This document shows positions 10,434 through 61,619 of a stretch of DNA of 64,000 bases, one piece after another. This DNA comes from Malacoraja senta. Taxonomy: Eukaryota. Position 1 is the stretch's first letter. Each line of letters opens with the position of its first letter. The notes below the pieces were generated by a model. The model did no database searches. It was not told where the DNA came from and was given only the letters and a program-made list of their open reading frames with translations. The translations under genes and the position numbers were made by a program. The stretch is taken from contig JAXLNO010004831.1 of the NCBI GenBank assembly GCA_038087875.1, positions 62,001 through 126,000 of the forward strand. The letters run 5' to 3'.

Positions 10434-10487
10434 ATGATGAGATCCTGCTTTGATGTTGGTGAAGTTTGGCTCAGTTGCTGCTGTTGA
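10434..10487 (+). promoter_or_regulatory. Candidate uORF (MMRSCFDVGEVWLSCCC*) whose TGA overlaps the leader ATG (TGATG)
   Basis: ATG at 10434 and TGA at 10485-10487, sharing the A of the ATG at 10487. Relevant only if transcription starts upstream of 10434. Confidence 0.3.
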
Positions 10488-10559
10488 TGCGTGAGGTTGT
10501 GCGTGAAATGATTCTGTTCATCTTGTTGAGTTTCTTCCGCGTACAAGGGGCTGAAGCAG
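10487..10559 (+). CDS. MHC class I-like gene, leader (signal peptide) exon: MREVVREMILFILLSFFRVQGAEA-G (second in-frame ATG at 10508)
   Basis: Hydrophobic core ILFILLSFF followed by an A-E-A cleavage motif. The exon ends in phase 1 at CAG|GCAAGT (GC-type donor). Splicing to 33848 gives AEA/GPHTLIYY, matching the mature class I N-terminus G-S-H-S-L/M-R-Y. Too short for the ORF track and 23 kb from the next exon, so the link is inferred. Confidence 0.72.
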
Positions 10560-10832
10560 GCAAGTTAATGATTCTCATTTTATTCGCTACTGGCTAAAAG
10601 CGTCTTGGCTTTATCTCAATCTTGACCGGAGGCGACTGAGTTTAAAAAAGCGCGCAATACACATTCAGTCTGGTTCATGGTTCACGTTAAAAGGGTTTAA
10701 TCTCCCCTGTTTCAGTACAATCCAGACTGGAATTTCTGCATTGATTTGCACAATGCCCCGTTTCCTCTGTGGAAGAAGGAACTACAGATATTGCTTTAAA
10801 CTGATTTTAACTCGTGTAAAACAAACAGGAGC

Positions 10833-11752
10833 GAGGCACTCACTAGGGTTTCCTCGCTGCTCCGCTCTTGCTCTCCCTTCCCCCCACATTCATAACAAGG
10901 ACAGAGTCCCCCTTGTCCTCACCTTCCACCCCATCAGCCGTCGCACAGCATATGATCCTCCATCATTTTTGCCACCTCCAACAGGATCCCAATACTGGCC
11001 ACATCTTCCCATCTCCACCTCTTTCTGCTTTCCGTGGAGACCGTTCCCTCCGAAATTCCCTGGTCAACTCGTCCTTTTCCACCCATACCACCCCCTCCCC
11101 AGGTACTTTCCCCTGCAACAGCAGGAGATGCAACACCTGTCCCGTTCCCTCTCCCCTCAACTCCATCCAAGGACCCAAACAGTCTTTCCAGGTGAGGCAG
11201 AGGTTCACCTGCACCTCCTCCAACCTCATCTACTGCATCCGCAGTTGCAGGTGTCAACTCCTCTACATCAGTGAGGCCAAGCACAGGCTCGGCAATCATT
11301 TCACTGAACTACTCTGCTCTGTCCATCTTAACCTACCTGATCTCCTGGTTGCTCAGCACATCAACTTCCCCTCCCATTCACAATCTGACCTTTCTGTCCT
11401 GGGCCTCCTCCATGGTCAGAGTGAGGCCCAGTGCAAATTGGAGGAACAGCACCTCATATTTTGCTTGGGTAGTTTACACCCCAGCGGTATGAACATTGAC
11501 TTCTCTAACTTTAAATATCCCTTGCGTTCCCTCTCTATCCCCTCCCCTTCCCAGTTCTCCCACCAGTCTTAATGTCTTCAACTACATTCCATCTTTGTCC
11601 AGTCAACTCCCCTGACATCAGTCTGAAGAAGGGTCTCGACCCGATAGGTCACCCATTCCTTCTCTCCAGAGATGCTGCCTGCCTGCTGAGTTACTCCAGC
11701 ATTTTGTGTCTACCTTTGAGTTAAACCAGCATCTGCAGTTCTTTCTTACACA
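10833..11752 (+). mobile_element. Penelope-like element 3' part (GIY-YIG) with terminal repeat
   Basis: ORF 10868-11572: CNSRRCNTC..NLIYCIRSCRCQLLYISEAKHRL, followed by the CTGAAGAAGGGTCTCGACCC terminal repeat. Confidence 0.88.
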
Positions 11753-11894
11753 AAGTGCATTGTTTGACAGGTTCATGTTTATGGCCAAATGTGGGAAGAG
11801 AGTGAGGCACTAGTACAATGCAAAATCAATAAAAGATTAGCACACACTGTGGATTTGTTATTGACTGAGTGACAACTCTTAGCTCCAAACGTGC

Positions 11895-12848
11895 GGTCGT
11901 CACGTTTACATGGTTTATTAATGATTTGGATAAGGAGATTGAATGTTTTGTGGCCACGTTTGCAGATGATGCTAAAATAGGTGGAGGGGCAGGCAGTGTA
12001 GAGGATCCAAGGACTTTACAGAAGGACTTGTTCGGGTTAGGAGAGTGGGCAGAGAAGTGGCAGATGAAATTCAGTATAGCAAAGTGTGGGAGACATGCAT
12101 TTGGTAATAAGAATAAATGCGTAGATTATTTTACAAATGGAGGGAGAATCCAGAAATCGGAGGCACACAGTGACATGGGAGTGTTGGTGCAGGACTCCCA
12201 AAAAGGTTAATTTGCAAATTGAATCGGTAGTCAGGAAGGTGATTTATATCAAGAGCACTGGATTACAAAAACAGAAATGTCATTCTGAGGCTTCAAAAGC
12301 GCTGGTCAGGCCACGTTTGGAGTACAGTGTACAAATTTGGGCCCCCTATCTGAGGAAGGATGTGCTGGCTCTGGTTCAGAGGAGGTTTACAAGAATAATT
12401 CCATGAATGAATGGGTTAGCATATGATGATAGTTTGACAGGACTGTGCCTCTACTCGCTGGAGGTAAGAAGGTTGAGGGGGGAACCTCATTGAAACTGAC
12501 AGAATAATGAAAGGCAAAGATAGAGTGGATGTGGAAAGGATGTTTCCACTGGTTGGTGAATCTAGGACCAGAGGTCATAGCCTCCGAATTAAAGGGTGCT
12601 CTTTTAGAAAGGAGGTGAGGAGGAATTTCTTTAGTCAGAGGGTAGTTAATCTGTGGAACACATTGCCACAGAGGGCTGTGAAGGCCAAGTTGGTGGATAT
12701 TTTTAAGGCAGACATCGACAAATTTTTGATTAGAACGGGTTATCATGGAGAGAACGCAGGAAAATGGGATTAGGAGGCACAGATCAGCCATAATGAAATG
12801 GTGGAGTAGACTCGATGGGCCGAATGGCCTAATTCTACTCCTGTAACG
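11895..12848 (+). mobile_element. CR1 LINE 3' fragment
   Basis: FINDLD..FADDAKIGG..WQMKF..KC; ALVRPRLEYSVQIWAPYLRKD; ESRTRGHSLRI..FFSQRVVNLWN; CR1 tail GGCCTAATTCTACTCCT. Confidence 0.88.
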
Positions 12849-14156
12849 TGAACGTGTACAGGTTAGGAGAGTGGGCAGAGAATTGGCAGATGAAATCCAG
12901 TATAGCAAAGTGTGGAGTCATGCATTTTGGTAATAAGAATAAAGGCGTAGATTATTTTACAAATGGAGAGAGAATTCAGAAATCGGAGGCACACAGTGAC
13001 GGGAGTGGTGGTGCAGGACTCTCAAAAGGTTAATTTGCAAATTGAATCGGTAGTCAGGAAGATGATTTATATCAAGAGGACTGGAATACAAAAACAGAAA
13101 ATGCCGCCCGATTTGTAAGAGTGTCAAAGGTCACAGGGAGATGACAGGGGAACGGCACTGAGAGGTAACGATAGGTCAGCCATGATTAAATTGTGGAGTA
13201 AACTCGATGGGCTGAACAACCAAATTCTGCACCTTTGACTTATGAAGTGAGTCAAAGTTCAGAACATGAGGGATGATCTTTTTATTTCTCCCCAGACTGG
13301 TGTGTCTGGAACCACAATTCACAGTTTAAAAATAAGGGTTCAGACATTCTTATGGCACCAAAACAATGGTGACACTTGTGTATTGCCTAGGTTAGGTCTG
13401 CTATATGATTTTACCGAGTTGTATACGGAACGAAGCATTTCACTGTACCTAGGTGCATGTGACAATAAAATATCATTGAATCATTGAATTCAGTGCAGTA
13501 ATGAGATGAAATTAGTTTTAATTAGTCTTTCAAATTCTCTGTCCAAGAAGGCTGTGGGCATTCAGTCAATCAGATGCTTGAGGCAGGGATAGGAATATGC
13601 TTGGATACAAAAGGAATCCGGAATTCGGAAAAATGGTGGTCTGCTAGAGGATCGGTTATGATCTTATAGAATATCAGAGATTGGGAACAAAGGATGAATG
13701 GCAACATTTTGCTTATGTTACTCCCACTCCACAAGAGAGTCCAGAAGGAAAGAGAGTATAGAATGTTCAATTGTCATATGTGCTGACTACAAAACAATGA
13801 CATTCATGTAGCAGACCTGTAAGACAATACAAATAGATAACATACTAAAAATCCAGTTAATTGATAATCCCAATACATGTGCACAAACACCGCAAATGCT
13901 TAGTTTAACCAAAGACAGTCCATAGGTCCACAGGGTCCGACTCGACACGTTACCTATCCATTCTCACCAGCGATGCTGCCTGATCTGCTGAGTTACTCCA
14001 ACACTTTGTCTTTATTTTGTTCATTAATCATAGCTGAGTATAGTGTCGTTCAGGGTTCAATATAAAAGAAGATTTTAATAATCACATTCCAGCACGCATC
14101 TCCAGAGCCAAACAAAACAATGACATTCTCCTTTGATGGTAATAATCTAATTTGGT

Positions 14157-15454
14157 GAATAGAATAGAATAGAATAGAATAGAAACTTTATTTGCCACAC
14201 GACCAGGGTTGGTGGTAATTGGGTTCGGTACATGATGGTACACTGCTTTAGCACATTAACACTAATAACATCACAGATCATAATAATAAAGCACATCACA
14301 AATCACAAATCTCACCAACAATACATAGTGCAAAAGAACAGACAAAAACCATAGACAAGACACTGTATACATCAAAGTCAAAAAGTTATTGGAGGGAATT
14401 AAGTGTTCTTATTGCTGAGGGGAAGAAACTGTTTTTAAAACGGGTGGATTTTGTAGCAAGTGACCTAAGGCGCCTCCCTGAAGGGAGAGACTGGAAAAGG
14501 TGGTTTGCTGGATGGGAGGGGTCCGAGATGATCTTTGTTGCCCGTTTTGAGGTACGTTGGAGGTAAATGGAATGGATTGAGGGGAGGGGAGAGTTGATGA
14601 TCCTAGAGGCCTTGGAGACAATGCGCTGTATTCTATGTAGTGAATGACTGTCAGTGTTTCCGTACCAGACTGTGATTGAGGAGGTGATGATGCTTTCAAT
14701 GATGGATTGATAGAAGCGGACCAGGAGGTGTTTGTGGACTCTGAACTTCTTGAGCTGTCTGAGGAAGTATAGGCGTTGTTGTCCTTTCTTAATGATGTGG
14801 TCAGCATTGATGTGCCATTTTAGATTATTGCAGATATAGGTGCCCAGAAACTTAAATAAGTTCGTGGAGGTTATGGGATGGGAGTTGACATGGACCGGGG
14901 GTTTGAGGTTTTGTTTGCGTCTGAAATCTAGGATGATTTCTAAGGTTTTTGAGGTGTTAAGCTGGAGGTTGTTGTCTGCGCACCGTTTGACTGCGCTGTC
15001 CACTGTTTGATGGTATTGTGATTCATTGTTGTCTGAGATGAGGCCAATTATTGTCCTGTCGTCTGCATATTTGAAAATATTAACTGAGCTGCATTGGGAT
15101 GTAAGGTTGTTGGTGTAAAGTGAGAAGAGCTGAGGTGACAGAACGCACCCTTGAGGGGCTCCTGTATTGATAGTCTGGAGAGTTGGAGAGTTTTTCACCC
15201 ACCTTGACTCTTTGTTGTCTGTTTGTCAGAAAATGTAAAATCCAATGGCACATGGCTAGGTGAATGCCCATGTCCAACAGTTTATTGTAGAGTTTAATTG
15301 GGTGTATAGTATTAAAGGCCGAGCTAAAATCTATAAACAGGATGCGTGCATAAGTGTTCGGTGATTCCAAATGATGTAGGGAGTAGTGAAGAGCTAGGTT
15401 GATAGCATCCTCCACAGACCGGTTGGCGCTGTATGCAAATTGAAAAGGGTCCAT
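14157..15454 (-). mobile_element. Rex1/Babar-type LINE, 5'-truncated
   Basis: RT motifs QFAY..NRSVEDAI, LFIDFSSAFNTI, GAPQGCVLSP, KYADD, FKFLG; (TTCTA)n tail at 14157-14183. Confidence 0.88.
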
Positions 15455-18400
15455 GCAAATAGAAAAGGGGAAACAGGCTTAGATATAAAGAATAACATTT
15501 ATAGCAGTTCCAATGTAGGAAAATGCTTCAATGAGATTCGTAAGAATATTATTCTGTAACATTTTACTTCGAGCAGTATAAAGGCATGACATGACAATTA
15601 GCAAAATAAACATTTAAGGTGCATCTTAAAGGAAGAATAAGAGGTAGTGATATTTAGAGAGCAATTCTATGACTTAGGCCTGCTCTTCAGATGAAATACT
15701 TAAATTTGTGAATAATCAGGAAGTTATACTGCCCGGTTCATCGTGGGTTCTGACCTCACCACCATCGAAGGGATCCACACGAGGCGCTGCCTCAAAAAAG
15801 AAGGCAACATCATCCCCCTGGCCACGCTTTCATTACCTCCCACCATGGGGAAGAAAGTATAGGTGTTTGAAAACCATGACCTCCAGGTTCAAGAATAGCT
15901 TCTTCCCAACTATCACGCACGTGAACAATACACAACGCTAACCTCAACTGTGAAATTGTATGGACTGTATGCATGCCGAGGGAGGAGCAGCGTAGGAAGG
16001 AACCGCAGATGCTGGTTTAAACCGAAGATAGACATAAAATGCTGGAGTAACTCAGCGGGTCCGACAGCGACTCTGGAGAAAAGGAATAGGTAGCGTTTCA
16101 GGTCGAGACCATTCTTCAGACTGATAGTCAGGGGAAAGGGAAACGAGAGATACAGGGGGTGATATAGAGAGATATAAGAACAAATGATTGAAAGATTTGC
16201 TTTGAATGAAAGAGCTGTTGGTCTTACATATTTAAATACAATGATCAGAATTTAAAATCTGAATATTTTTCAATCAGAAAGATGATGGGTGAATGGGATG
16301 GAGCAAGTTAGCCCAATGATGACAAAGTCTGAAGAAGGGCCTCAATCTGAAACATCACCCATTCCTTCTCTCTGGAGATTCTGCCTGTCCCACTGAGTTA
16401 TTCCAGCATTTTGTGTCTATCGCTATGTGCTGGAGTAACTCAGCTGGTCAGGCAGCATCTCCGGAGAACGTGGCTAGATGACGTTTAGGGTAAACACCCT
16501 TCCACAGGGTGAAGAAGGGGTCTTGACCCGAATCATCTATCCATCATCACATATCCATGATCTCCAGGGATGCTGCCGGACCCACTAAGGTGCTCCAGCA
16601 CTTTGTGTCTTTTTGTGAACCAACATTTGTAGTTCCTTGTTTCTACAGTGTAAATTGACTGTCATTTGTAGGTAAGTGATAGAATCTGGAGAGAGATGAT
16701 GGGAATTTGCAGAGAATAAGAATGGGTTGGTCAAGAGCAAGAGTTTAATTGTCATCTGTTCTGGCAATGGAACAATGACATTCTTATACACATATTAAAT
16801 ATACAACAATCAATGGTAAAATAAATTACTATTAGTTATACTAGGTAACCAGACCATAACAGTGGAAAAACAAAACATCCTTACTGCAACCAAAATAAAG
16901 TTATTGCAGATCAGAGTTGTTGAGGTAAGGTTGTGGTTAGTGTTGTGCAGTGTTTAAATGCCTGCTGCTCATAAGAAAAAAGCTGCTCTTAAACCTGGAG
17001 CTAACAGTTCTCATGCTCTCTAACCTCAGAGGCAGTTGATTGGTTCAACGGTATTTTATTTGTGGCAAGTACCGAGGTACAGTGAAATTCATTTTTGTAT
17101 ACAGTTTAGTACAAGTATCACTATATATAAGCCCTTAGATACGTCTGAGATAAGCATCGCAGATACAGTACAAGTGTATAGCAGTAGTATGCTGAGACAG
17201 TATACAGTGTCGCCAGTTTATGGTGCCATATCCAAGTCCCTCAAGTTGTAAGTGAGGGTTCTTGGCCTGACCATGAGGCCCATTGTCCTGGTGTTTTGCA
17301 GGGTTGACCTGACCAAGCGAAGCTGTGGTGTCCTCTACTGCTGCAGGGTGCAACTGGTCCATGCGCCCGGCCTCTTGGAGCAGCGCCTGGAACAGCCAAG
17401 CCCCAGGCTGCGGCAGGGCCTCCAGCGCCCACTCCACTGTTGAGGCCGTGCATTCCCTCCCGCAGCCAGTCTGCCTATAAGCCATCCATCTGACTCCTTC
17501 CACTCTGGGCGGGCGAGCTGGGCCTTCCAGGTGGGTCCTCCATCCTTGGTCCACAGCGAGCAAGAACTCGGTCCATGATGGATGGGCCAGATCTTCCGGG
17601 CGAATTCCTGGTCCAGGGTGGCCGGCCCTGAGAGTATGGCCAGGGTGGTGTGGGTCTCTGATGATATTAGCTGTCTTTCTGAGGCAGCACCTCCTGTAGA
17701 TCCATGGTGGGATGGAATGGTATGGAATGAGTGCTTCATGGTCAGAGTGGACTGTCGGCTGAAGGTTCTGTTTGTGTGTCTCTGTGACTATATGTGTGGA
17801 GAATGCTTCAAAAGAGTAGGTGAAGGGGCATTCTAAATGATGGGATGCACATATCATTGTAAACGGGGCCCTCAAAGTATTGATCTGTAAAATGCTGAAT
17901 CTGCATTTTATTGTAGGGGACTAGAGTTTAATGGTAGCCAATCCACATAAACACTTGTCTCGTCTATGAAGAGTTTTGCAGACTGCTCCAATTACAATAA
18001 ATTAATATATAACGAGTGGGATACTAGAAGATACATTCCTTTTATCCATAGATGCTGCTTGTTCCACTGCGTTACTCCAGTATTTTGTCTCTATCTTTGG
18101 TGTAAGCCAGCATCTGCAGTGCCTTCCTACACAGACACAAGAAGGATCCCAACAATGGGTTCTGTTTGTATGGAGTTGATACGTTCTCCCTGTGACCGCT
18201 CGGGTTTCCTCTGGGTGCTCAGAGGGCGGTGGAGGCTGGTTCTCTGGATACTTTCAAGAAAGAGCTGGATTGGGCTCTTAAAGATAGTGGAGTCAGGGGA
18301 TATGGGGAGAAGGCAGGAACGGGGTACTGATTGGGGATGATCAGCCATGATCATATTGAATGGCGGTGCTGGCTCGGGGCCAAATGGCCTACTCCTGCAC

Positions 18401-19384
18401 CTATTGTCTATTCTCTATTGTCTATTGTTTCCTCCCATGTTCCAAAAACATGTGGGTTTGTAGGTTTATTGGCCGCTGTAAATTGCCCTGAGTGTGTAGG
18501 ATGTGAAACAGGGAAAATATAGAACTAGTGTATGGGTGATTGATGGTCAGTGCAGACTCAGTGGGCAGAAAGGCCTGTTTCCATGCTGCATCTGTTAAAA
18601 AAGATTGGTGAGCATGATACCAGAATTCAAAGGTTACAGAGAGACCAACACATTTTAGTTTGTACAGAGAAGAACACCCAAGAATGTTTGTATTCAAAGA
18701 GACCAACAAAGTAATAAAGGTTTGCAGGTACAACGTCCAACAGTGAGCATTGCTTAATCTAATCTTATACTTAGAACATTGTAGACGTAGGGCATTCAGC
18801 ACAGGGAGGCTGTCCCATTGAGGGGGACGAGAACAAATGGGGTACTGTGGGGATGGGGGCGCCACCAAGAATGAAGGGGGAACTGGTGGGGATGGGGTCT
18901 GCTGCCATGTGTGGCAACAGGCAGTGGATAGGACTGTTCGGTACTTTGTAACTTTGTCTGCGCCAACACATGACGACATTTTTGTACTGCCTAGGTTCAG
19001 TTTAGTTTATTGTCACGTGTACCGTGGTACAGTGAAAAGCTTTTTGTTGCTTACTAACCAGTCAGTAGAAAGACAATACATGATTACAATCAATGCATTT
19101 ACAATGTAGAGACACATGATAAAGGAATAATGTTTAGTGCAAGGTAAAGCCAGCAAAGTCCGGTCAAGGATAGACCGAGGTTGTATGGAAAACAAAGCAT
19201 TTCACTATACCCAGGTACCCTGGGTACATGTGACAATAGAGTATCATTCAATCATTCTTTCATTCATCAGTCCTATTCCTCACAATTTATTTTCCATATA
19301 ACACAGGCACTCATGGCCGCCAATGCTCCTTTGATTTTCTTGCCATTTACGTGTGTTGATCTGGCTAATGGGTTTTGTGAAGTA

Positions 19385-19700
19385 CAGCACAGTGGTGCAA
19401 TGGTAGAGAGTTGCTGCCTCATAGCGCCAGAGACCCAGGTTCAATCCTGACTTCATGTCTGTCTATGTGGAGTTTGCACATTTTCACTGTGACCGAGTGG
19501 GTTTCCTCCAGGTGCTCCGGTTTCCTCCCACAACCCAAAGGCATGCAGGTTTGTAGGTTAATTGGCCTATGTAAATTGCCCCTAGTGTGTAAAGAGTGGA
19601 CGAGAAAGTGGAATAACTAGAGTGAATGGGAGATCAATGGTCAACATGGACTCAGTGGGCCGAAGGGCCTGTTTCCATGCTGTAACTCTAAACTAACCTT
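19385..19700 (+). mobile_element. tRNA-derived SINE
   Basis: Same family motifs. Confidence 0.8.
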
Positions 19701-19967
19701 AAAAACCACTAAAATTACTGATTTATTGCAAGTAGCTAGATTCAAAACTATTTAAACTACTGAAGACGGGTCCTGACTCAAAACGTTACCTGTCCATTCC
19801 AGCCACAGATGCTGCCTGACTCACTAAGTTCCTCCAGTATTTCATTGCTCAAGATTCCAACATGTCTCGATATTAACTACTTGTTTGAATAACACTGTTG
19901 TTTGGTATTTTTATGATATTTTTACTGTTGAATTGCATGCTGAAATGTTCATACCTTGAACATAGTT

Positions 19968-21420
19968 GAATAATAATAATAATAATATATTTTATTGTCA
20001 TTGCACGTCAGTGCAACGAGATTTAGTATGCAGCTCCACCGATGTACAAGAAAAGTAAAATAAATAAATAAGCAAGCTGAGTGACGTGACCATCCGAGGG
20101 AGACTGTCCAGGGGGGGTGGGTGGGGGGGGGGGGGCACTCAGCAGGGCCGGTTCAGAGCTACTATAGCTCTTGGAATAAAGCTGTTTCTGAGTCTGGAGT
20201 TTCGGGCGTAGAAGGCCTTATAACGTCTGCCGGAGGGAAGTAGTTCAAACAGTCCGTTACAAGGGTGTGATGAGTCCTTATGGATGCTGACGGCATTCCT
20301 GAGGCACCGTGTGTGGTAGATGCCCTCCAAGGCTGGTAGCTCTGTCCCAATGATCCTCTGCGCTGTGTGGACGACGCGCTGAAGAGTTCTCCTCTCCGCC
20401 TCCGTGCAGCTGAGATACCACACAGAGATGCCATACGTTAATATGCCCTCTGTGGTGCAGCGGTAGAACGTTGTCAGCAGCAGTTGGGGCAGACCAGTCT
20501 TTTTTAATGTCCTCAAGAAGAACAGTCGTTGCTGTGCCTTCTTGACCAGCGCAGCGGTGTTGGTGGACCATGTGAGGTCCTCTGAAATGTGAGTGCCCAG
20601 AAACTTAAAGCTGGACATTCTCTCCACACTTTCCCCGTAAATGGAGATTGGGGCGTATTCTCCATTATGGGACCTCCTGAAGTCAATAATAATCTCCTTG
20701 GTCTTGGAGGTGTTTAGTGACAAGTTGTTATGAGCGCACCAGTCCGCCAGGTTCGGCACCTCCGCTCTGTATTTTGTTTCATCACCGTTGGTGATCAGCC
20801 CAATCACTGTTGTGTCATCTGCAAACTTCACGATGGTGTTGGTGTCGAATGCAGGGACACAGTCGTGAGTGAAGAGGGAGTAGAGCATGGGGCTTAGTAC
20901 ACAGCCCAGTGGTGTGCCGGTGCTCAGGGTGATAGTGGAGGACAGGTGCGGGCCCAGTCTCACTGCCTGCGGTCGCTCCGTCATAAAGTTCAGGATCCAA
21001 TCGCATATCGGCGAGCTGAGGCCTAGCTGGTGGAGTTTGGTGGTGAGCTTGGTGGGGATGACCGTATTGAATGCAGAGCTATAGTCAATGAAGAGCATCC
21101 TCACATACGTGCCCTGTCTGTCCAGGTGAGTCAGGACAGTGTGAAGAGCCAGAGAGATGGCATCCTCTGTTGATCTATTTGCCCTGTATGCAAATTGATG
21201 GGAGTCCAGTGAGGCAGGGATGCTGGATTTGATATGGAAGAGGACCAGCCTTTCGAAGCACTTCATTGGGATTGGAGTTAGGGCAACCGGGCGGTAGTCG
21301 TTCAGGTTGGTGACTTTGGACTTTTTCGGCACCGGCACTATGGTGGCTGTTTTCAGGCACTTGTGGACCGTTGCCAGAGATAGAGACAGATTGAAGATTC
21401 TCGTGAATACCTCCGCCAGA
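19968..21420 (-). mobile_element. Rex1/Babar-type LINE, 5'-truncated, RT frame still open
   Basis: ~427 uninterrupted codons (20139-21420): [43 protein letters not shown]; (ATT)n tail at ~19970-19987. Confidence 0.92.
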
Positions 21421-48211: not shown

Positions 48212-48378
48212 GATGGATCTTCCCTGTAGGAGGAGGGAGAGCACGAGGACCCAACAGAGTCATCACTACTGATGGATCTTCCCTGTAGGAGAAGGAGGGG
48301 GGAGAGCCCTAGGACCCAGCAGAGTCATCACTACTGATGGGTCTTCCCTGTAGGAGGGGGGGAGCACTAGGAGCCAGC
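48212..48378. repeat. ~60-bp tandem repeat, ~2.7 copies, inside the nested hAT
   Basis: GATGG(A/G)TCTTCCCTGTAGGAG...AGAGTCATCACTACT units start at 48212, 48271 and 48336. Confidence 0.85.
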
Positions 48379-50094: not shown

Positions 50095-51800
50095 ATGTCT
50101 TCCAAGACACGCACGTATAGTGAAACATTTCTCAAGTTGGGCTTCACAAGCATTGTTCAAAATCCGTGGTCAAGCCGCAATGTGTTCTCTGTGCCAAGGT
50201 TTTGAGTCACGAAAGCATGAAGCCCAGCAAACTGAAGATCCATTTGGAGTCTTGTCACAGCAACCTGGCGGGGAAGAGCGGGGACTATTTCAAACGAAAA
50301 GAAGCCGTACTCAAGGGTTCCCGCATCTATTCAACGGGTCACTGCGCTCATCAAAATGAAGTAGCGTTGGAGGCTTCATACCGGATTGCTTATTGAATCA
50401 CACAGACTAAGAAACCACACAGCATCGGTGAAGAGCTTATCAAGCCATGCCTTCTCGAAGCAGCGAAGTTGGTGCTGGAATCTCGGATATGAGTAATGAT
50501 ATTCTGCTGCAAGTAGTGAGGGCTGTGACGAGAAGTCGAGTGTATTCACTGCAACTGGGCGAGTCAACAGATGTTGCCTCATATTCCCAACTGCTAGTCT
50601 ACGTTCGTTACCTCAATGGAGAAGCCATGCGGAGGAGTACCTGTTCTCGGAGCCATTGGCTACTACCACTCGGGGAGAAGATGTGTTCAGAATGCTGGAA
50701 GCCGTCCTCATCAAACATGAGCTTGGCTGGGAATGCCTTGTCGGGATGTGTACAGATGGGGCACCTTCCATGGTCGGTTGCAGATCCGGTTTCCAAGCCT
50801 TCGTGAAGGATGTCGCTCCACATGTCTCCTTCCCCCACTGCATGATATATCGCCATGGTGTAGGGATGAAGACTCTCCCTCTTGGTCTTCGAGAAGTGCT
50901 TTCAGATGTGGTGAAGATTGTGAACCACATCCGAGAGAGCGCAACGAACTCAAGAATCTTCAAATCGATGTGTGAAGAAATGGGCGCCGATTTCACTATT
51001 CTGTTATTCCACACAGAGGTGCGCTGGCTTTTGCGTGGTAAAGTTCTCAATCATGTGATTCAACGTTGAGAGGAAATAGCGTTGTTCTTGGAGAGAAGGG
51101 GTACTGAGAAGGAGAATCAGCTTCATGAAAAGATGCAGGTTGAACTGTTCGTGATGAAGGTTGCTTACTTGGCTGACTTCTTCGCCGAGGTGAATTCCTT
51201 GAACCTGTCACTTCAAGGAAACCTCCCAATGGCAAAGTGGCAGCATTCAGGAGGAATCTTTACCAGAGAAGAGTCCAGGACGGTGACTCGACTATCTTCC
51301 CTGAGATGATAACTCTCCTGGATGCTATGCCTGATGCTGAATGCCACTTCCACGAGGAGATCTCAACCCACCTTCTGGCAATTAGTGAAGCCATCGAACG
51401 TGACTTCCCCGGACATGACGACCGCTCTTGTGATCAGTGGATCATCCGACCCTTTTCCGTTGAAGACGGTGGCATCAGTGATACTGATGTAACTGCGAAG
51501 GTTGAATTTTACCGAATTCGTGAAGATGCGCAGCTCAAGAGTGACTTCATGGAACAAGAGCTCGCCACGTTTTGGCTGAAAGTGAAGGACTGTCCTGCTC
51601 TTTCGAAGAGGGCCCTGACCCTATTGGTCCAGTCCCCCTCAACCTCTCACTGTGAGGGTGGATTCTCAACTATGGTAACTCTGAAAACCAAGGTACGCAA
51701 TAGGCTTGTGATCTACACTGACATGCGATGCTGCCTGTCGAGCATTCGTCCACGTTTTGATTGCCTGGTGACTGCGAAGCAATTTCAGCCATCCCATTGA
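50095..51800 (+). pseudogene. Buster/Charlie-type hAT transposase (ZBED5/FAM200/SCAND3-like), disrupted
   Basis: MSSKTRTYSETFLKLGFT, KPQCVLCAKVLSHESMKPSKLKIHL (BED finger), LQLGESTD, CTDGAPSMVG, HC..H, TEVRWL.RGKVL, CEGGFSTM..LKTKVRNRL. Multiple stops and frameshifts. Confidence 0.92.
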
Positions 51801-52814
51801 CTGAGCATTGGCTGACATGTTTTTAATAAATCGGGCTGTTTTTTCCCCAAATTTTGTTTCAGAGGTCACGGTACTGATCAAGAATGCCTGATGGGGTCGT
51901 GGGGCCAAAAAGGTTAAGAACCACTGCTCTAAAGCTTAAAACTAAAGGGGCTAATAAAGGCCACAAAGTGGCTTTAGTGAGTCGGATTACACAAAATCCC
52001 ACATCTTTTTCAAGGTTTCATGGTTAGTTTATTGTCACATATACCAATTAAGGTACATTGAAATGCAGACTACCATACACTATGCAAAAAAAAAGCAACA
52101 AGACACACAATTACGTAAAAGTTAACATAAACATCCACAACAGAGGAGCCCGCACGTTCCTCACTGTGATAGAAGGCAATAAAGTCTAATCTCCTTCCTC
52201 TTTACCTCCTGCGGTCGGGGCAGTCAAACAATCTGCAGTCGGTGGTCGAAACCCCCATTGGGGAATCGAAACTCCCACGTCGGAGCGGTCGGAGCGGTCG
52301 AAACTCCTGCGGCTTGGAGATCCCGGATGTCGGTCTCGACCGTAGACCACAGGCTCCGCGATGTTAAAGTATTGCAGGCTCTCACAGTTGGAGCCCTAAA
52401 GTCGATCCCCGACAGGGATCGCGAGCTCCATGATGGTAAGTCCACAGGCTCCTGCGATGGATCTCCCGGTCGATCTCTAGCAAAGGCCGCCATTCCTCAA
52501 TGTTAGGCCGCATTGTGGACGGAGATACGATACAGAAAATATCACATCTACGTCGAGGTAAGAGATTAGGAAAAGTTTCCCACAACTCCTCCACCCCCCC
52601 ACAAAACAAGCTAAAGAACACTAAAGAATATACATTTAACACGTACAAAACTGACACAAAGAAGGAAGGGACAGACATACTGTTGGCGAGGCAACCATTG
52701 CAGCAAAAGGTGGATTACTTAAAGATATAGAAGGGAATATGTGCTTGGAGTTTGGCGAGGTTTGGTTTCACCAAGGAAGACATGGAGAATAGTAAGGACT
52801 ATTAATAGTAAGTA

Positions 52815-53619
52815 CATCATAAAATCCTCCAACATTTTTGCCACCTCCAACGGGATCCCACTACTGGTCACATCTTGCCATCTCCACCCCTTTCTGCTTT
52901 CAGCAGAGACCGTTCCCTCCGAAACTCCCTGGTCAACTCGTCCCTTCACACCCAAACCACCCGCTCCCTGGATACTTTCCCCTGCAACTGCAGGAGATGC
53001 AACACCTGTCCCTTTACGTCCCCCCTCGACTCCGTCCAAGGACCTAAAGTCTTTCCAGGTGAGGCAGAGGTTCACTTGCACCTCTTCCAACCTCATCTAC
53101 TGTATCCGCTGTTTCAGTTGTCAACTTCTCTACATGAGTGAGACCAAGCGCAGGCTTGGCGATCGTTTTGCTGAACACTTCCCCTCAGTCCGTCTTACCC
53201 TACCCGATCTCCCAGTGGCTCAGCACTTCAACTCCCCCTCCCATTCCCAATCTGACCTTTCTGTCCTGGGCCTCCTCCATTGTCAGAGTGAGGCCCAGCC
53301 CGAATTGGATGAACAGCACCTCATATTTCGCTTGGATAGTCTATATTCCAGCGGTATGAGCATTCACTTCTAATACTTTCGATAGCCCTTGATTTCTCTC
53401 TCCATCCCCTCCCCTTCCCAATTCTGCCACCAGTCTTACTGTCTCCGCCAACATTCTATCTTTGTCCCTCCACTGACATCAGTCTGAAGAAGGGTCTCGA
53501 CCCAAAACGATGCCCATTCCTTCTCTCCAGGGAAGCTGCCTGATCCGCTGAGTTACGCCAGCATTTTGTGTCTCTCTACGATTTTAACATCTGCAGCATC
53601 TGCAGTTCTTTCTTACACA
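52815..53619 (+). mobile_element. Penelope-like element 3' part (GIY-YIG) with terminal repeat
   Basis: NLIYCIRCFSCQLLYMSETKRRLGDRFAEH..VAQHF in ORF 52741-53373; terminal repeat at 53480-53600. Confidence 0.88.
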
Positions 53620-53739
53620 TGGAGAATCAATGTGGAGAATGCTAACATGCAGGGACACTTTGAAGTTAAGCAAGAAGAAGATGTTGGATCACTTGAAGAG
53701 AAATGTGGATAAATCCCCAGGACAGAGGGGTGTAGTGGA

Positions 53740-54200
53740 TGATAATAATAATCGTTGAAAACATTAGTGCCGTGCTGGTTTCCGATGGGCACGGTGACGG
53801 ACGCACCACACATCTCTGTCCTCCATGCAACTGGCAAGCTCCTCTTTTGTCTCTACACATGCGTCTTCCATCAACGTCTTCAGCATCATCTTGATTGGCC
53901 GTCCTGGGTCAAGTCTTCCATGGGTGGGTTCCCACAGCACAACCTTGTTTGCTGGCATTTCTGGGTGGCAGAGCCAGTGACCTGCGAGCGTCATCCTTCT
54001 CAACGTGATCTTCTCGGTCAGAGGTGGATTCTCCCCATAGAGCTGGGCGTTGGTGATGTGGTCCCTCCATCTGACATTTTGAACTTTTCCGAGCATTTGG
54101 GTGTAGGTACCATCGAGAGACTTGGACAGTGCTGGAGTGAGAGTCCATGCCTCACACCCGTACAATAATATGGTCTCTACAGTTGTACGGAAGGCCAAAT
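53740..54200 (-). mobile_element. RTE-clade LINE 3' fragment
   Basis: VETILLYGCEAWTLT..LDGTYTQML..WRDHITNAQLY..RRMTLAGH..GRP; short (ATT)n tail at 53741-53751. Confidence 0.8.
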
Positions 54201-54354
54201 ATTCAGGCTGTAGTTCAGTGACAAGTAGAGTTCTGCAGGGATCTGTGCTGTGACCCTTGCTACTTGTGACATATATAAATGACTTGGACCCTGGTGTTCA
54301 GAAATTACCCAGTCATAACAATTAATCAAATAATGATTTTTATTTTTATTTCAG

Positions 54355-54630
54355 ATTATCACTACGTTCAAGGACAGTTTGGTTGTGAGGTGGACGATCA
54401 CCGTCCCACTGTAGGGATATTGAAGTTGGCTTTTGATGGAAGATATGCATTTAGTTTTGATAAGGACAAACTAAAGTGGACGGTGCATGGTCCAATAGCT
54501 GAGCCCTTCAAAGAGAATTGGGACAAGAATGAAAAAATGAACCGTTATTTCAAGAGCTTGTTAGAGCATGACTGTGTGGATCTATGGCTTACATACTATG
54601 CAATTGGAAAGACATACCTGACCAGAAAAG
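54355..54630 (+). CDS. MHC class I-like alpha2 domain exon (92 codons)
   Basis: Acceptor tttttatttcag|AT, donor AAG|GTGAGT, 276 nt (the usual alpha2 size), phase 1/1. Motifs QGQFGCE (C101), AFDG, W133, W147, LEHDCV (C164) and GK..L.RK. Confidence 0.95.
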
Positions 54631-55254
54631 GTGAGTTCAGAAGAAAGGATGTTGGTTTGTGATGATAGGCAATGAGTAATATTTCACTCTGAGGCAATGA
54701 GTAATATTATCTCTGACCCAATCATGACAGAGGGAAAGGTCATTCGGCCCATTGATTCTATGCTAGTTTTCTATGCAATGTCGACAAACTGTTCCACAGC
54801 TCTCTCTCACAACTTGCACGCAGGTCCCTCGGATTCTCCTTGCATTCAGCTCCACGACGGATAATTTGCAATGTCCAACTAACTCACTGGCACGTCTTTG
54901 GTATATGGGACAAAACTGGAGCACATGCAGGAAGCCAACTGAGTCATAAGGTCATAAGTGATGGCTGCAGCATTAGAACATTCGGCCCATCAAGTCGACT
55001 TCGCCAGTCAATCATGGCTGATCTATCTCTCCCTCCTAACCCCATTCTCCTGCCTTCTCCCCATAACCCCTGACGTGCATACTAATCAAGAATTAAAAAT
55101 ATCCATTGAATCACCACCCTCTGACAAAATAAATTCATCCTCATCTCTTTCCTAAAGGAATGTCCTTTAATATTGAGACTATGACCTCTCGTCGTAGACT
55201 CTCCCACCATTGGAGACATCCTCTCCACATCCACATCTATCCAAGCCTTTCACT

Positions 55255-56560
55255 ATTTTTTTGTTTTTAAAATATTTTTATTAGAAGCATGTGCATATCA
55301 TAATACAAACATTTCTTATATATCAATCCTACTTTGCTAATAGGTGGGAGTCCAGCTATCAAAATAATAGTGGTCCTCATTTATCAATTGTATATTAAAT
55401 CTGCTTCTATTTAGTTTTGTTTTATAGATAGAAAGTGAGAAATTTAAAAAAAAAGGCATGATAAAGAAGAATGGAATAATTTACCAATAATACAACTTTG
55501 GAGATAAGTCCGTAGGTTATAAAGCATAAACTATTCATCTAATCCTGAGCTTGGATTTCAGTCAGATTCCCATGCTGAACCAATTTACCCTTTCAAAAAA
55601 TCAATAAATGGAGACCATATTCTATTAAATAATTCATGTTTGTCAATTAAGACAAGTCTAGTTCTTTCCAAATGTAAGGTCTTTGACATTTCCATAATCC
55701 ACATTTTAATTGTGGGGGCTATAGGACCTTTCCAAAATGTTTATATTAATTTTTTCCCAATTATTATACTATAATCAAGAAAGTTTCGTTGGTTTATTGT
55801 AAGTCTTAGGCTTTGTTCTGATATTCCTAATATTATTAGTTTTGAGTCGGGATCCAATTGACTAATTCAGAAATTATTCTGAAAACCTCTGGACAGAATT
55901 TTTTGAAATTTATACAATTTACAAAGGTATGAGTTAAGTTAGCCTCTAAATGCTGGCATTTATCACAAATAGGAGAGATATGTGGGAAGATTCTATTTAA
56001 TATTGTTTAAGAATAATGTAATCTATGTAATACTTTAAATTGTATTAAAGCATGTCTGGCATTTAACGAGCATTGATGTATATATTGTAGACTTTCGTCC
56101 CAAATATCTTTCGTTATGGGTTGGCCTAATTCATTTTCCCATGTGTGTCTATATAATTCCGTCGGCGAGACCTCGCTATCTAAGAGGGTATTATAAATAT
56201 GAGATATTAATCTTTCTGTATTAGGATGTTTATTCAAACATTCATCAAGGATTTCTGGTTCCCTAGTTCTGTAATCTTGTGTATTTGATTTAATGTAATC
56301 TTTAAGTTGTAAATATCTGAAAAAGTTATTTGACTGTATTCCGTAAATCTGTTGTAACTCCTGAACTGAAAGAAAAGTGCCTTTCCTATAAAGATGTCCC
56401 ATCTTTTTAATTCCATAATTTTTCCATTGTGTAAAGCCTTTATCCAACATGGAAGGTTTGAATAAAGGGTTGTTTATAATGGGGAGACAGAGTGATAAAT
56501 TATCCAATTTTAAAGTCTTTTTTAATTGTTTTCAAATTCGTTTACCACTATATATTACAG
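55255..56560 (-). mobile_element. L1-clade LINE 3' fragment (ORF2 C-terminus)
   Basis: IINNPLFKP..WKNYGIKKMGHLY..FFRYLQLKDYI..IQFKVLHRLHYS, then a Cys-rich region; A-rich tail near 55255-55280. Confidence 0.8.
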
Positions 56561-56589
56561 GATTTTCACTATAGTTTTTTTAATGCAAT

Positions 56590-56890
56590 TTTGTGGGAGC
56601 AAACATAATTGAACCAATTTCAAAAGGCAAACAGTTTTTCACTATTTTGTATGATTCAATGAGGTCCCCCCTTATTCTTCTAAACTCCAGCAAGTACAGG
56701 CCCACTGCCATCAAATGATCATCATATGTTAACCCACTCATTCCTGCGATCATTCTTGTACACCTCCTCTGGACCCTCTCCAGAGCCAGCACATCCTTCC
56801 TCAGATATGGTGCCCAAAATTGCTCACAATGCTCCAAATGTGGCTTGACCGGCGCCTTATAGAACCTCAGCATTACATCCCTGTTTGACA
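56590..56890 (-). mobile_element. CR1 LINE fragment
   Basis: VKPHLEHCEQFWAPYLRKDVLALERVQRR..RGDLIESYKI. Confidence 0.8.
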
Positions 56891-57204
56891 GGGAGAAAGT
56901 GTAATTGATGTCTTTCATATTAGTTAACCATGGATTTTCTTGACCACAGTTGACAGCCCCTAATGCGATTGCATGTCTATCACACATCTCAAAAGAGCAC
57001 AGCGTTAAGCTTCGAAGGGCAACGTTTACACGAGATGTGCAGGTCAAGTGTTTTTTTGCAGAGAGAGCTTGATACCTAGAATGCGCTACCAGGAGTGGTG
57101 GTAGAGGAGGACATGATAATGGTGCTTAAGAAGGTTTTGGACAGGCTTGTGAATGTGCAGGGAATACAAGGATATGGATCACATGCAGGCAGTGGAGATT
57201 AGTT

Positions 57205-57500
57205 TTGGTTTAGTTTAGAGATAGAGTATGGAAACAGGATCTTTGGGCCACTGAGTCTGCACTGACCAGCAATTGCCCATTCACTATTTTTGTCCTACAA
57301 GCTAGGGACAATTTACAGAAGCCAATTAACCTACAAACCTGCACGTCTTTTGTATTTGGGAGGAAACCGGAGCCCCCGGAGAATCCCACAGGGTGACAGA
57401 GAGAACGTACAAACTCCGTCCAGACAGCACTCTAGTCAGGATCGAACCCGGGTCTCTAATGCTGTAAGACAGCCACTCTATCACTGTGCCACTGTTTTGC
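57205..57500 (-). mobile_element. tRNA-derived SINE
   Basis: Same family on the minus strand. Confidence 0.8.
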
Positions 57501-57714
57501 CTTAGTTTAACTTGGTATCCTGTTCCACATGGACATTGCAGGCTGAAAGTCCTGTTCTTGTACTGTTCTATGTTCTATATATTCTCATTGGACAGGGCAG
57601 AGATATGTTTTCCACTCCTCCAGCCTCCATGTTGAATACTCACTACCAGTTTAAATCTGATTCAATTTGTCAATCCATTTCTCCCTCCCCTCCTGCCCTG
57701 CTCCCTATTCTATA

Positions 57715-58180
57715 TTTTGAAGTAGTCATTCCCTTTTTCACTCCCTGGTCTGTCTACTATCCCCACAACTTTCCTCTACTTTCCTGTCTTGGTGCATGCA
57801 ACATCTATCCATTTACCTCTTCCCTTCCCACTGTCCATAGACCCAGGCAGTTCTTCAAAGTGAAACAGCGTGAAACACTTGTACTTCCAGTCAAATCTAC
57901 TGCATTTAGTTTTCATGACGTAATCTTCCACATTGCATCAATGAAACAAATAGAATGGCTGCTTTCTGGAGAACCTGCATTCAATCCATGGGACTTTCTA
58001 AGATTCCTAATTCCTGCCACTTTAATTCTCCATTCAACACCCACCATGATCCATCCATCTGTACCTCTTACACTAGGATAACAAGGGTGAAAGTAACCTT
58101 GAGGATCAACAACTCAGCTTCTGCCTTGACATGTTGCAGCCTTTCACACTCCATTCCACATTCAACGAGTTGTATTCCCT
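57715..58180 (+). mobile_element. Highly decayed Penelope-like GIY-YIG fragment
   Basis: Residual nucleotide similarity to the PLE copies above (CACAACTTTCCTC..GGTGCATGCAAC..CCCAGGCAGTTCTTCAAAGTGAAACAG). Confidence 0.5.
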
Positions 58181-59641
58181 GTCGATAAAAGAACTGGTCA
58201 TTTCATAAGTTCATGTTCATTTATTGTCACATACACCAATTGGTGTAGTAAAATTCACTGGCCAGGTCAGTCATACAATTTTAAAAAGCAACAGACTCAA
58301 AAACACATTTTGACATAAATATCCATCATAGTGACTCCTACACATTCCTCACTGTGATGGAAGGCGAAAATAAAGTTCCAAGTCCTTCCCTTGTTGTTCT
58401 TCCTTGGTCGGGGGCCTCGAGCCTCCCGTTGAATAGACGGTCTTGAGTCCCGTAGCCGGCGGCGTTCGGACCCTCCGCGTCGAGGTGATCAGCTCCCGCA
58501 TCGGGGGATTGTCAGCTCCCCCGCGCCGGGCGATCGACCCTCACGTCGGGGCTGGACGAACCTTCTGCGGCATTGGAGCTCCCGACTAGCCTCTCCCGAG
58601 ACTGGGAGCCCTTGATGGTAAGTCCGCAGGCCGCGGTGGGAGCGATCCCAGGCAAGGGATCCGCTCCGATGGTAAGTCCACGCCCCGTGGTGGGGCTCAC
58701 GACAGTCCTTTTCAACTGTTAAGTTGAAGTCAGAAAGAACAGATGCAAGAAGTATGAAGAAGGACACCAAGCTGAAACATTACATAACCATGTCTTCCAG
58801 ATGCTGCCTGAGCCACTGAGTTACACCTGCACGTTTTTGTGTTTTTTTTAAATTACAGTAAAGTTATCCACCTGCAAAATTAGGACAGCCTGACCTACTT
58901 GAGTACTGCAGTATGTGCTGCATTTTATATAACACTGTTTAGTTTCATGCTTGCAGAGATGCAGTGAAATGGTTTGGATGGAACAGCAGATGCTGGACAC
59001 CCCGTCCCTTCTCTCCAGAGATGCTGCCTGTCCCGCTGAGTTACTCCAGCTTTTTGTGTCTATCTGCAGTGAAATGGTTGTTCTGCATTCTCCCCAGTCA
59101 AGTCATACTGTACATAAGTACAATTCGTCCTCTTCTGGAACAGCACGCAGAGATCCACCACATTCCAGGACTATCTTGCAGCTTTCAAGTCTCTGAGAAG
59201 TCTGATTTTGCCCTAAGGAAATACCCAATTTCACATTTTCTCATGTTAAGGCCCAGTGTCATAACAGCACTGGATTGATGAAGTAGAGGCGCCTGCCTCA
59301 GTTTAAGTTTTTCTGTTTCAAGATTGTGATCAAACCCTCGTCACTGGAACTGTGTCGCAGTGCCACCCATTACGTATGTCCCAATTATCTTTCAACATGC
59401 TGGAATCACTTGTTTTTTTATCCTTTTTAGACTTTTTTCATGAATTGTTCAATATAAACAGTTATGCTACAACAGTTAAGAGCAGCTACCACTTAGTTTC
59501 AGAGACGTAACAACACAAGAGATAGTGTTGGAAGAATGATCAAACTCACACATAGTGGTTAGAATCCATAGTCTTTTATTAGTAACTCTGCAGAGGAAAC
59601 ACAAGGTGCTTTCTTCTCAGCATGCTTACTACCAGTCTACC

Positions 59642-59664
59642 AGAGAGAGAGAGAGAGAGAGAGA
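59642..59664. repeat. (AG)n microsatellite
   Basis: Direct inspection. Confidence 0.9.
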
Positions 59665-59754
59665 GCTGTCTAATAAGCTTGTGGGCGGAGCCACAGTATG
59701 AGTGACACTAATCTACAGATAGGCACAGGGATAATTTTCGGTTTCTTATTGTCA

Positions 59755-60050
59755 CGTTTAGTTTCGAGGTACAGCATGAAAATAGGCCTTTTGGCCCACT
59801 GAACCTGTGCTGACTAACGACCACCCAAATATTAGTTCTATCCTACACACTAGGGACAATTTACAGAAGCCAAAAACCGTACAAACCTGCACTTCTTTGA
59901 ATGTGACGGAACTGTAGCACCCGGAGATAACTCACATGGTCACAGGGAGAATATATGAACTCTATATAGACAGCACCCATTGTCAGGATTGAACTTTGGT
60001 CTGTGGTACTGTAAGGCAGCAACTTTCCCTCTGCGCCACTGTGCTGCCCA
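59755..60050 (-). mobile_element. tRNA-derived SINE
   Basis: Same family on the minus strand. Confidence 0.75.
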
Positions 60051-61352
60051 TGTACGGAGGTAGTGTGTAAAGCTTTGTTTTGCATGCTATCCAATTGGAT
60101 GAGGTAACAAAATACATATATATGATCATCAAACTCAAGAACTGTAGGTAGAGCAAAGGGGAAGGTACAGAGTGTCGCATATAGTTCTCAGCAATGTAGC
60201 ACACCAGTTCCATTAGATAAGGGTTTCGACACGAAACGTGACACATTCCTTCTCTCCAGAGATGCTGCCTGACCCGTTGAGTTACTCTAGCATTTTGTGT
60301 CTATCTGCGGTTTAAACCAGCATCTACAGTTCCTTCCTACATAGTTCTATAAACAAAGTCCACTGTCTGTAATGGGGTAGTGGTCAATTGGACAGTACCC
60401 TAGCTTATGGAACGATCATTCAGAAGCCTGATTTTCTCCTCGGTTATCAAGTTTCCGAGTAAGCCATTTGGTCCTCTATCCTGCCCACCATTCAATATGA
60501 CCATGGCTGACGTTCCTCAGGCACCAACTCCTGTTCGATGTCAGTTCCTCATTGCACTCAGTTCTCCAATTTAAGTTTAAATTAAGTTAACTACCGCCAC
60601 ATTAAATGCTTCCAATGATTTTGTCTTCACAAATCTCTGGCGCCAGAGAATGACCACACTCTGCAAAAAGAGATTTTGTAAACAAATGACTGGTCTCTTT
60701 TATCTCTTATTGAAGAGGAGTGAAAATACTGCCAATTTTAAGCTTGTCCCCTCCCCAATTGACCCTCATTTCGTAAGTTGTCAATTATTTATTATTGTCA
60801 ATAATATGCCCTAGTGAAAAGATTTGTCGTTGGTATTAGTTTATTATTGTCACGTGAACTGAGATATAGTCAAAAGTTTGTCTGTGTGTTATCCAATCAG
60901 ATCATACTACACATGTGCAATCAAGCCATCCACAAGTAGAACAGTGCAAAGAGAAAAATATTCAGAGTGCAGAATATCGGGTTACAATATCATAGCATTA
61001 CAGTTACAGAGAAAGTGCAGATCAAAAAGAGTTGCAAGGATCACAATGAGATTGGTTGGAAGATCAGGGCAACATCTTATCTTACATGAGAACCATTCAG
61101 TAGTCCAATAACAGTGGGGAAGAAGCTGTTCCTGAATTTAATTGTACGTACTTCCAAACTTTCTTGTGTACTGTCTTAACAGGGAGCATACAATCCCTTT
61201 TAAACCACGTGTTTTGTTGATGGGACGAAAGAGGCAAAATGGGGCAGATGTGGACAGTAACTTGGTTGTTGTAGTAGACTGAAGAATATTTTGTGGTGGG
61301 TGACTGTGCAAGTTTTACTGAAGATGAAAATAACCATCTTACTGTCTTGTAA

Positions 61353-61619
61353 TTTCCCCTGAGGTCACTCTCGCTGCCCGCCCTGATGACCATTCAGTCC
61401 TGTACTGCACTGTGTTTGGATTTTACCCACCGGCCATCAATGTCAGCTGGTTGCAGAATGGTCAACATGTCTCTGAGACCAAATCTTCTGGGGTCATACC
61501 CAACAACGATGGAACATATCATCTAAGGTCTGTCCTTGAGTATGATCCGTATGATGGGAAACAGTATTCCTGTCATGTCGATCACAGCAGCCTGCCCGGT
61601 GGGAAGACCATCATCTGGG
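61353..61619 (+). CDS. MHC class I-like alpha3 (Ig C1-set) exon, 89 codons; expected acceptor reads AA rather than AG
   Basis: VSPEVTL..LYCTVFGFYPPAINVSW..PNNDGTY..YSCHVDHSSL..W, with both Ig cysteines and the FYP motif. Donor TGG G|GTAAGA. The phase-compatible start at 61353 is preceded by ctgtcttgtAA. Confidence 0.9.

Follow-up and report, generated by a model that had tools for sequence, protein, structure and literature searches.

The window, by which we mean the whole stretch of 64,000 nucleotides analysed here, contains the first four exons of a nonclassical MHC class I gene which, judged by its sequence, is a member of the UGA lineage, and this skate orthologue is probably damaged, being best explained as a null allele or young pseudogene in which the exon frames are still open. 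UGA, a lineage of nonclassical MHC class I, occurs in sharks and rays in one or few copies. Lineage and structure were already known, and gene models had already been made for relatives; the window provides an additional skate copy.

Exon anatomy of the gene

The end coordinates (10487-61619) and the four exon positions proposed in the preliminary description matched exactly. The gene is arranged as follows (slashes mark exon borders).

10487..10559, + strand: leader (signal peptide) exon, 73 nt, starts MREVVREMILF..., ends in phase 1
10560..10561, + strand: GC donor of intron 1, CAG/GCAAGT (relatives GTAAGT)
10562..33847, + strand: rest of intron 1 after the donor (23,288 nt with donor), with retroelement ORFs at 14386-15198 (-) and 20139-21707 (-)
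33848..34108, + strand: alpha1 exon, 261 nt, ctag/GA...CAA/gttagt, AG and GT borders, phase 1
34109..54354, + strand: intron 2, 20,246 nt, with LINE ORFs at 38428-39198 (+), 40487-42208 (-) and 43002-44015 (-)
54355..54630, + strand: alpha2 exon, 276 nt, tttcag/AT...AAAAG/gtgagt, AG and GT borders, phase 1
54631..61350, + strand: intron 3 as far as the lost acceptor (whole intron 6,722 nt)
61351..61352, + strand: lost alpha3 acceptor, AA where orthologues have AG
61353..61619, + strand: alpha3 (C1-set Ig) exon with borders as in relatives, 267 nt, VSPEV...TIIW, donor TGGG/gtaaga
61362..61363, + strand: nearest canonical AG for alpha3, giving a 256-nt exon with a frameshift and stop codons eight codons later

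Both outer borders are exact, as the leader starts with ATG and alpha3 ends at 61619, followed by GTAAGA. The leader is not a chance open reading frame, as its conservation across three skate orthologues shows; 23 of its 25 residues match those of XP_055521884 from L. erinacea, and the leader DNA with its flanks is 92% identical to loci L001 and L002. Alpha1 is 85% identical to protein P0001, and Pfam searches gave MHC_I for alpha2 (5.5e-12) and C1-set for alpha3 (3.3e-20). In tblastn searches every domain exon occurs once in the window, and no second class I gene was detected there. Neither the window nor the flanks of L001 and L002 contain the sister gene P0006, and a search for contigs encoding P0001 or P0156 found none.

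Hydrophobicity analysis and tblastn with orthologue tails revealed no transmembrane (TM) or tail exon in 61620-64000. This fits the spacing in relatives, where alpha3 is followed by the TM exon after 3.5-6.3 kb and the exons for TM and the DYQNI/DYQTI tail together 3.5-13 kb beyond it, as the window stops 2.4 kb past alpha3. The TM and tail exons of this gene are therefore predicted to lie beyond the end of the window, past position 64000.

Introns and transposable elements

Very large introns laden with transposable elements had been proposed earlier, and this was borne out: the introns measure 23,288, 20,246 and 6,722 nt, and inside them are reverse-transcriptase and endonuclease reading frames, matching Pfam RVT_1 in intron 1 (6.4e-13 and 2.3e-29) and RVT_1, zf-RVT and Exo_endo_phos in intron 2. 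Retroelement insertions have lengthened the gene to its present stretch of more than 51 kb. The expectation that such introns make annotation miss the gene did not hold, since NCBI has modelled the gene in Amblyraja radiata, Leucoraja erinacea and Rhinoraja longicauda, where its recorded range is 31 to 78 kb.

The very long introns, together with a GC donor and the lack of one acceptor, would also be expected if distant exons of different genes or transcripts had artefactually been read together over 51 kb. However, exons of each type are present only once in the window, the order leader-alpha1-alpha2-alpha3 is the same in three other skate genomes, where the span from leader to alpha3 is 23-64 kb, and the cDNA contigs L004 and L005 of relatives unite all domains in one transcript. 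An artefact of this kind is extremely improbable, and these cDNAs refute the idea that the exons belong to different transcripts.

Assignment to the UGA lineage

The preliminary description had left the lineage undecided, but it can be decided as UGA because of the match scores to PDB entry 9CH4 and a UGA clade with 99% SH-aLRT support; it is neither UBA, UCA, UDA or UEA nor a new lineage. Chain A of 9CH4 ('Crystal structure of shark nonclassical MHC CLASS I, UGA', released 2026-03-18) matched alpha1, alpha2 and alpha3 with E values of 1.4e-35, 7.7e-34 and 2.6e-33, respectively, and with 119-124 bits per domain, its residues 3-86 aligning to alpha1 and 90-179 to alpha2. The three domains align end to end with about two thirds identity by eye, and the cysteines match. 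Among NCBI models from three other skates the joined chain is 88-92% identical (91.8% to A. radiata XP_032898133, 89-90% to the L. erinacea models); the models compared (XP_032898133.1, XP_055486429.1, LOC129716032 and P0164 from Rhinoraja) share with the window gene the leader, the exon phases and the very large size of the introns, which differs from species to species, whereas their donors are gt and their acceptors ag throughout.

The tree comprised shark and ray orthologues, UAA and the sister P0006, with no named UDA, UEA or UFA sequence and no CD1 in it. Within it the window chain fell into a skate clade (SH-aLRT 99), a batoid clade (98) and the UGA clade of 17 rows (99), with P0006 as sister (SH-aLRT 100). 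Classical UAA from Triakis scyllium (P0067; PDB 6LUP) stood apart, in a separate clade, so that the possible grouping with classical UAA was not observed. Nonclassical identity, as claimed at the outset, is supported by the UGA match and by a groove without most peptide-terminus anchors.

In the literature searched, the lineages are mentioned only in a review and a 2023 paper on MHC organisation, and the supplements of PMC10751288 give no table linking lineages to accessions.

Groove anchors and private changes

The anchor alignment made initially by hand was reproduced by HMMER (chicken BF2, fish class I) and by MAFFT (Triakis UAA), with Y7, Y59, R84, W147 and Y171 kept. Compared with the classical set (Y7, Y59, R/Y84, T143, K146, W147, Y159, Y171), the window chain has T143F, K146N and Y159L, and besides these W167L and an alanine at position 123. 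Triakis UAA has the same domain plan, exon phases and five kept residues; it differs from the window chain at T143, K146, Y159 and W167, all replaced in the latter. Of the five anchors originally listed as lost, four are lost lineage-wide, and 9CH4 has the same Y123A-type, T143F, Y159L and W167L replacements and likewise keeps Y7, Y59, R84, W147 and Y171. The fifth, K146N, is private to the window copy: position 146 is K in 15 of the 16 other UGA proteins and N in the window copy only.

The window copy differs from 9CH4 in the lost alpha3 acceptor and, as the only copy to do so, in N at K146 and R at the conserved alpha1-helix W. Four of its private changes (W to R in the helix of alpha1, K146N, L to M and N to D) replace residues kept by other UGA proteins. 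Conserved sites (identical in at least 14 of the 16 other UGA proteins) account for 4 of 7 private changes in the window copy vs. 3 of 19 in other skates, a borderline difference (Fisher test, p = 0.057). Pairwise dN/dS to relatives was 0.26-0.38, the same as between intact relatives. On the terminal branch, the 4 synonymous and 7 nonsynonymous changes of the window copy did not differ significantly from the 13 and 11 in Rhinoraja (p = 0.47); branch-specific dN/dS was dropped as a pseudogene test because the counts were too small.

Resemblance to CD1

CD1 molecules are class I-like and present lipids in mammals and birds. For alpha3, the best PDB matches besides 9CH4 include CD1 chains, which rank below MR1 and one antibody heavy chain, whereas the best matches of alpha1 and alpha2 besides 9CH4 are classical class I, MR1 and ZAG, not CD1. 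In a fold comparison chicken CD1-1 ranked 15, with a predicted model of pLDDT 70 and a weak alpha1 helix. The tail of human CD1b contains YQNI, and a Y-x-x-I/V end of the tail (DYQNI, YENI, YNAV) was found in 10 of the 16 UGA proteins of the alignment. According to a review (PMC12562908), UFA and UGA are CD1-like, and crystal and mass-spectrometry data, cited there as a personal communication, suggest that they bind lipids. The review statement and the loss of anchors suggest that the UGA lineage may bind lipid-like ligands. In intact relatives the chain includes a TM segment and a short tail that carries a Tyr-x-x-Ile/Val motif; associated with beta2-microglobulin, it might load lipid-like ligands in endosomes, which might then be shown to T cells.

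Probable splice-site damage in the window copy

AA acceptors are extremely rare, and acceptor loss commonly leads to exon skipping. At the alpha3 acceptor the assembly base of the window gives ttgtaa/, whereas L. erinacea and A. radiata have ttgcag/ and Rhinoraja has ttgtag/; the acceptor is AG in every other genome or run examined, and sequencing runs X1, X2 and X4 have G at 61352. Normal splicing of alpha2 to alpha3 is therefore unlikely, and the window copy is probably non-functional through loss of this acceptor. The position equal to 61353 is where alpha3 begins both in the L004 cDNA and in X23, a contig from an RNA-type run, and L004 has the same junctions as X23. Use of the nearest AG would shift the frame and bring an early stop. 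The four phase-1 exons described earlier do have open frames, but a chain free of stops requires alpha3 to start either at 61353, where AA precedes it, or at 61362, where TG does. Also, the leader donor is gc in the window and gt in three relatives (two in a three-species alignment with the window, and gtaagt in Rhinoraja too), and canonical splice sites are thus not found at every intron of this copy. Taken together, the AA acceptor, the GC leader donor and the private changes at kept residues would point to loss of function; the open reading frames of all four exons argue against it.

The same open frames, and the pairwise dN/dS values, would be compatible with a working UGA gene, in which an assembly error or one allele of a heterozygote accounts for the A at 61352, or the AA site is usable, and the GC donor works. 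GC-AG introns in a CAG/GCAAGT context are usually functional, and the context is ideal here. Furthermore, in X23, which is about 99% like the window, the end of alpha2 is joined to 61353 and the exon is left at 61619. However, X23 is not the window copy: at 61390 it has the ancestral T, and the end of its alpha2 differs from the window by one base; bases private to the window copy are C at 61390 and the AAT codon for N146 in alpha2. When runs of the same organism were sought, the maximal share of sampled words in any run was 0.67 for alpha3 and 0.32 for alpha2. The AG found everywhere else, the rarity of AA acceptors and the private changes at conserved residues also speak against a working gene, which we consider possible but doubtful.

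Skipping of alpha3 would be in frame, because phase 1 is shared by the end of alpha2 and the start of the TM exon in relatives (...cag/AAGGAAAT). Given how commonly acceptor loss causes skipping, the copy might express an alpha1-alpha2-TM protein without Ig domain and probably without beta2-microglobulin, a layout found in ULBP/RAE-1-type ligands. The alpha3 frame is, however, intact and conserved, and the private alpha1/alpha2 changes speak against such a product being under constraint, so that its expression is very unlikely. The broader proposal that the window holds a splice-disabled or alpha3-skipping UGA allele beside intact copies, or encodes an isoform without Ig domain, is unlikely as well. 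A damaged UGA orthologue, either null allele or young pseudogene, is the reading that we prefer.

Implications for the UGA lineage

The window reveals no new lineage and no new kind of molecule, and the intron sizes of the UGA gene vary freely between skates. If a disabled allele did exist beside intact copies, UGA would be dispensable or variable in copy number in skates. The window separates two kinds of anchor loss, four replacements that are lineage-wide and K146N, which is private to a probably dead copy. UGA and UFA have been put forward as a sign that lipid presentation of the CD1 type dates to the first jawed vertebrates, and each UGA orthologue helps to define the conserved features of the lineage.

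Exon structure of the class I-like gene

A stop-to-stop scan of the plus strand of the window, which contains no runs of N, yielded one MHC-like open stretch per domain, and splice sites were then read to define exon borders.

Exons of the class I-like gene (slashes mark exon borders)
10487-10559, plus strand, leader exon, donor CAG/GCAAGT
33848-34108, plus strand, alpha1 exon, ctag/GA...CAA/gttagt
54355-54630, plus strand, alpha2 exon, tttcag/AT...AAAAG/gtgagt
end at 61619, plus strand, alpha3 exon, TGGG/gtaaga

The outer coordinates proposed in the preliminary description (10487 and 61619) proved exact by splice-site reading. Pfam recognized alpha2 as MHC_I (5.5e-12) and alpha3 as C1-set (3.3e-20). 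The three domain pieces each match the window once in tblastn searches, and the window therefore holds one gene rather than a cluster. Its introns (23,288, 20,246 and 6,722 nt) contain reverse-transcriptase and endonuclease open reading frames. Except for a splicing problem, the four-exon gene is real. Transmembrane and tail exons were not found in the window, which stops 2.4 kb past alpha3; the transmembrane exon lies 3.5 kb past alpha3 in Rhinoraja and 6.3 kb past it in Amblyraja radiata, and the tail exon of the relatives follows 4-7 kb further on. The Leucoraja erinacea protein XP_055486429.1 (311 aa; positions 64492-64817 of locus L001) runs on past its alpha3 donor and ends within intron sequence (…TIIWGKNVKYSFIDNHYLLLFPF), and the same open read-through is present in the window at 61620-61675. 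As the L. erinacea contig stops 3 kb past the end of this protein, transmembrane exons are simply absent from that scaffold.

The gene is a member of the UGA lineage

For each exon the best solved relative by far was PDB 9CH4 chain A (E values of 1.4e-35, 7.7e-34 and 2.6e-33), entitled "Crystal structure of shark nonclassical MHC CLASS I, UGA" and released on 2026-03-18, followed by classical class I, MR1, ZAG and CD1. When the A. radiata orthologue was modelled with AlphaFold (pLDDT 70) and the model compared with the PDB, 9CH4 was again the top match (Z 20.0). In a whole-library HMMER search, alpha1 matched a Leucoraja model with 85% identity and shark models with about 61%. The A. radiata protein as query retrieved 17 relatives from skates, sawfish, manta, stingray and six shark orders, each species having one to three copies. 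With the joined window chain, A. radiata XP_032898133.1 shares 91.8% identity, L. erinacea XP_055486429.1 shares 90.4% and the product of LOC129716032 shares 89%. In a maximum-likelihood tree, built without named UDA, UEA and UFA sequences, it was nested in a skate clade (SH-aLRT 99), a batoid clade (98) and a 17-row UGA clade (99), with classical UAA from Triakis outside. The Leucoraja gene model P0006 is sister to the UGA clade (support 100) and lies with the Leucoraja UGA copy on one 127-kb contig. The nonclassical reading was right and the lineage, initially considered undecidable, can be named: judged from its sequence, the gene belongs to the already described UGA lineage, a name taken from the 9CH4 title.

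The residue mapping made by hand was reproduced both by HMMER against chicken BF2 and by MAFFT with Triakis UAA and sturgeon class I included. Anchors Y7, Y59, R84, W147 and Y171 are retained. All five anchor losses reported initially are seen, and four (123A, T143F, Y159L and W167L) are common to most aligned members of the UGA clade; the fifth, K146N, is not clade-wide, as 15 of the 16 other UGA proteins keep lysine there. Of the 16 UGA proteins aligned, 10 terminate in a transmembrane segment plus a Y-x-x-I/V tail (DYQNI or DYQTI in skates; YENI, YNAV and similar in others). UFA and UGA have been described as CD1-like, single- or low-copy genes, for which crystal and mass-spectrometry data suggest lipid binding (personal communication in review PMC12562908).

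Intron expansion and annotation

Among the relatives, Rhinoraja has the shortest leader-to-alpha3 span, 23.0 kb, against 54.8 kb for L. erinacea and 64.4 kb for A. radiata. Among the four skates, single introns differ about two- to seven-fold between species (intron 2: 4.3, 11.3, 20.2 and 26.0 kb), which points to rapid, lineage-specific gain or loss of retroelements in the MHC-Ib region. The expectation that introns filled with transposable elements make annotation miss or fragment the gene was not borne out: the NCBI pipeline annotated the equally stretched orthologues in all three relatives despite their large introns.

Intron 2 carries minus-strand LINE open reading frames (40050-47198), with RT/zf-RVT at 40487-42208, endonuclease at 43002-44015 and a 516-aa frame at 44155-45705. 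In the Pristiophorus model P0002, an N-terminal repeat extension aligns to 42889-43107 on the minus strand (E 1e-4), which suggests that the extension is a LINE-derived mis-annotation. At L. erinacea LOC129716032 (P0152, P0153, P0155, P0169 and P0151), NCBI isoforms X1-X4 of 574-663 aa join UGA exons to a GPR139-like 7TM receptor; P0169 has PF00001 plus PF00129, and a stand-alone 'GPR139' model shares a 90% cluster with the fusion isoforms. The fusion is probably a read-through annotation of an adjoining gene.

Altered splice sites and the functional state of the window copy

The preliminary description had assembled a stop-free phase-1 chain. The frame is indeed open if alpha3 begins at 61353, the only start that keeps it so, but the two preceding bases are AA, and joining at the sole canonical AG before alpha3 (61362-63; 256-nt exon) leads to stops eight codons past the junction. 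In the orthologous-locus alignment the acceptor reads ttgcag/TTTC in L. erinacea (L001) and A. radiata (L002), ttgtag/TCTC in Rhinoraja longicauda (L003) and ttgtaa/TTTC in the window. The leader donor is gcaagt in the window versus gtaagt in all three relatives.

Transcript contigs L004 and L005 from public runs each encode a full 334-aa orthologue, with the junctions ...ACCAGAAAAG/TTTCACCTGAGG and ...ATCTGGG/AAGGAAATGGG. In X23, an RNA-type run, one contig aligns to 61353-61548 with two differences, and of the 30 unaligned bases at its front 29 agree with the final 30 bases of alpha2 in the window; a second stops at 61619 and continues as AAGGAAAT, with which the transmembrane exon begins in A. 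radiata and Rhinoraja. These junctions indicate that 61353 and 61619 are the true alpha3 borders in a very close relative or sister copy. Position 61390 is T in X23 and a private C in the window, so the X23 contig was not transcribed from the window copy.

A working gene is possible if the A at 61352 is a base error or heterozygous, or if the AA site is used. Runs X1, X2 and X4 have G at this position, and the highest share of alpha3 words in any searched run was 0.67. In X1 nearly all depth is G, and depth sums imply one short minor contig (184.5 of 7,901.5) that keeps the window's A. Within introns X1 and X2 reach depths in the thousands, unusual for whole-genome data, and both may be clone or capture libraries.

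Pairwise dN/dS between the window and its relatives (0.26-0.38) resembles values between intact relatives. The changes private to the window (4 synonymous, 7 nonsynonymous; p = 0.47 vs Rhinoraja) are too few to separate relaxed from constrained evolution. Of the seven replacements, four (L to M, W to R in DEWM, N to D and K146 to N) fall at positions that 14 or more of the 16 other UGA proteins conserve; among the private changes of the other skates, only 3 of 19 do so (Fisher p = 0.057). An unlikely alternative is that alpha3 is skipped in frame. The window copy is probably non-functional: the lost alpha3 acceptor, the weakened leader donor and the private replacements at conserved positions suggest that it is most likely a null allele of a UGA gene or a copy disabled so recently that its exons have not yet decayed.
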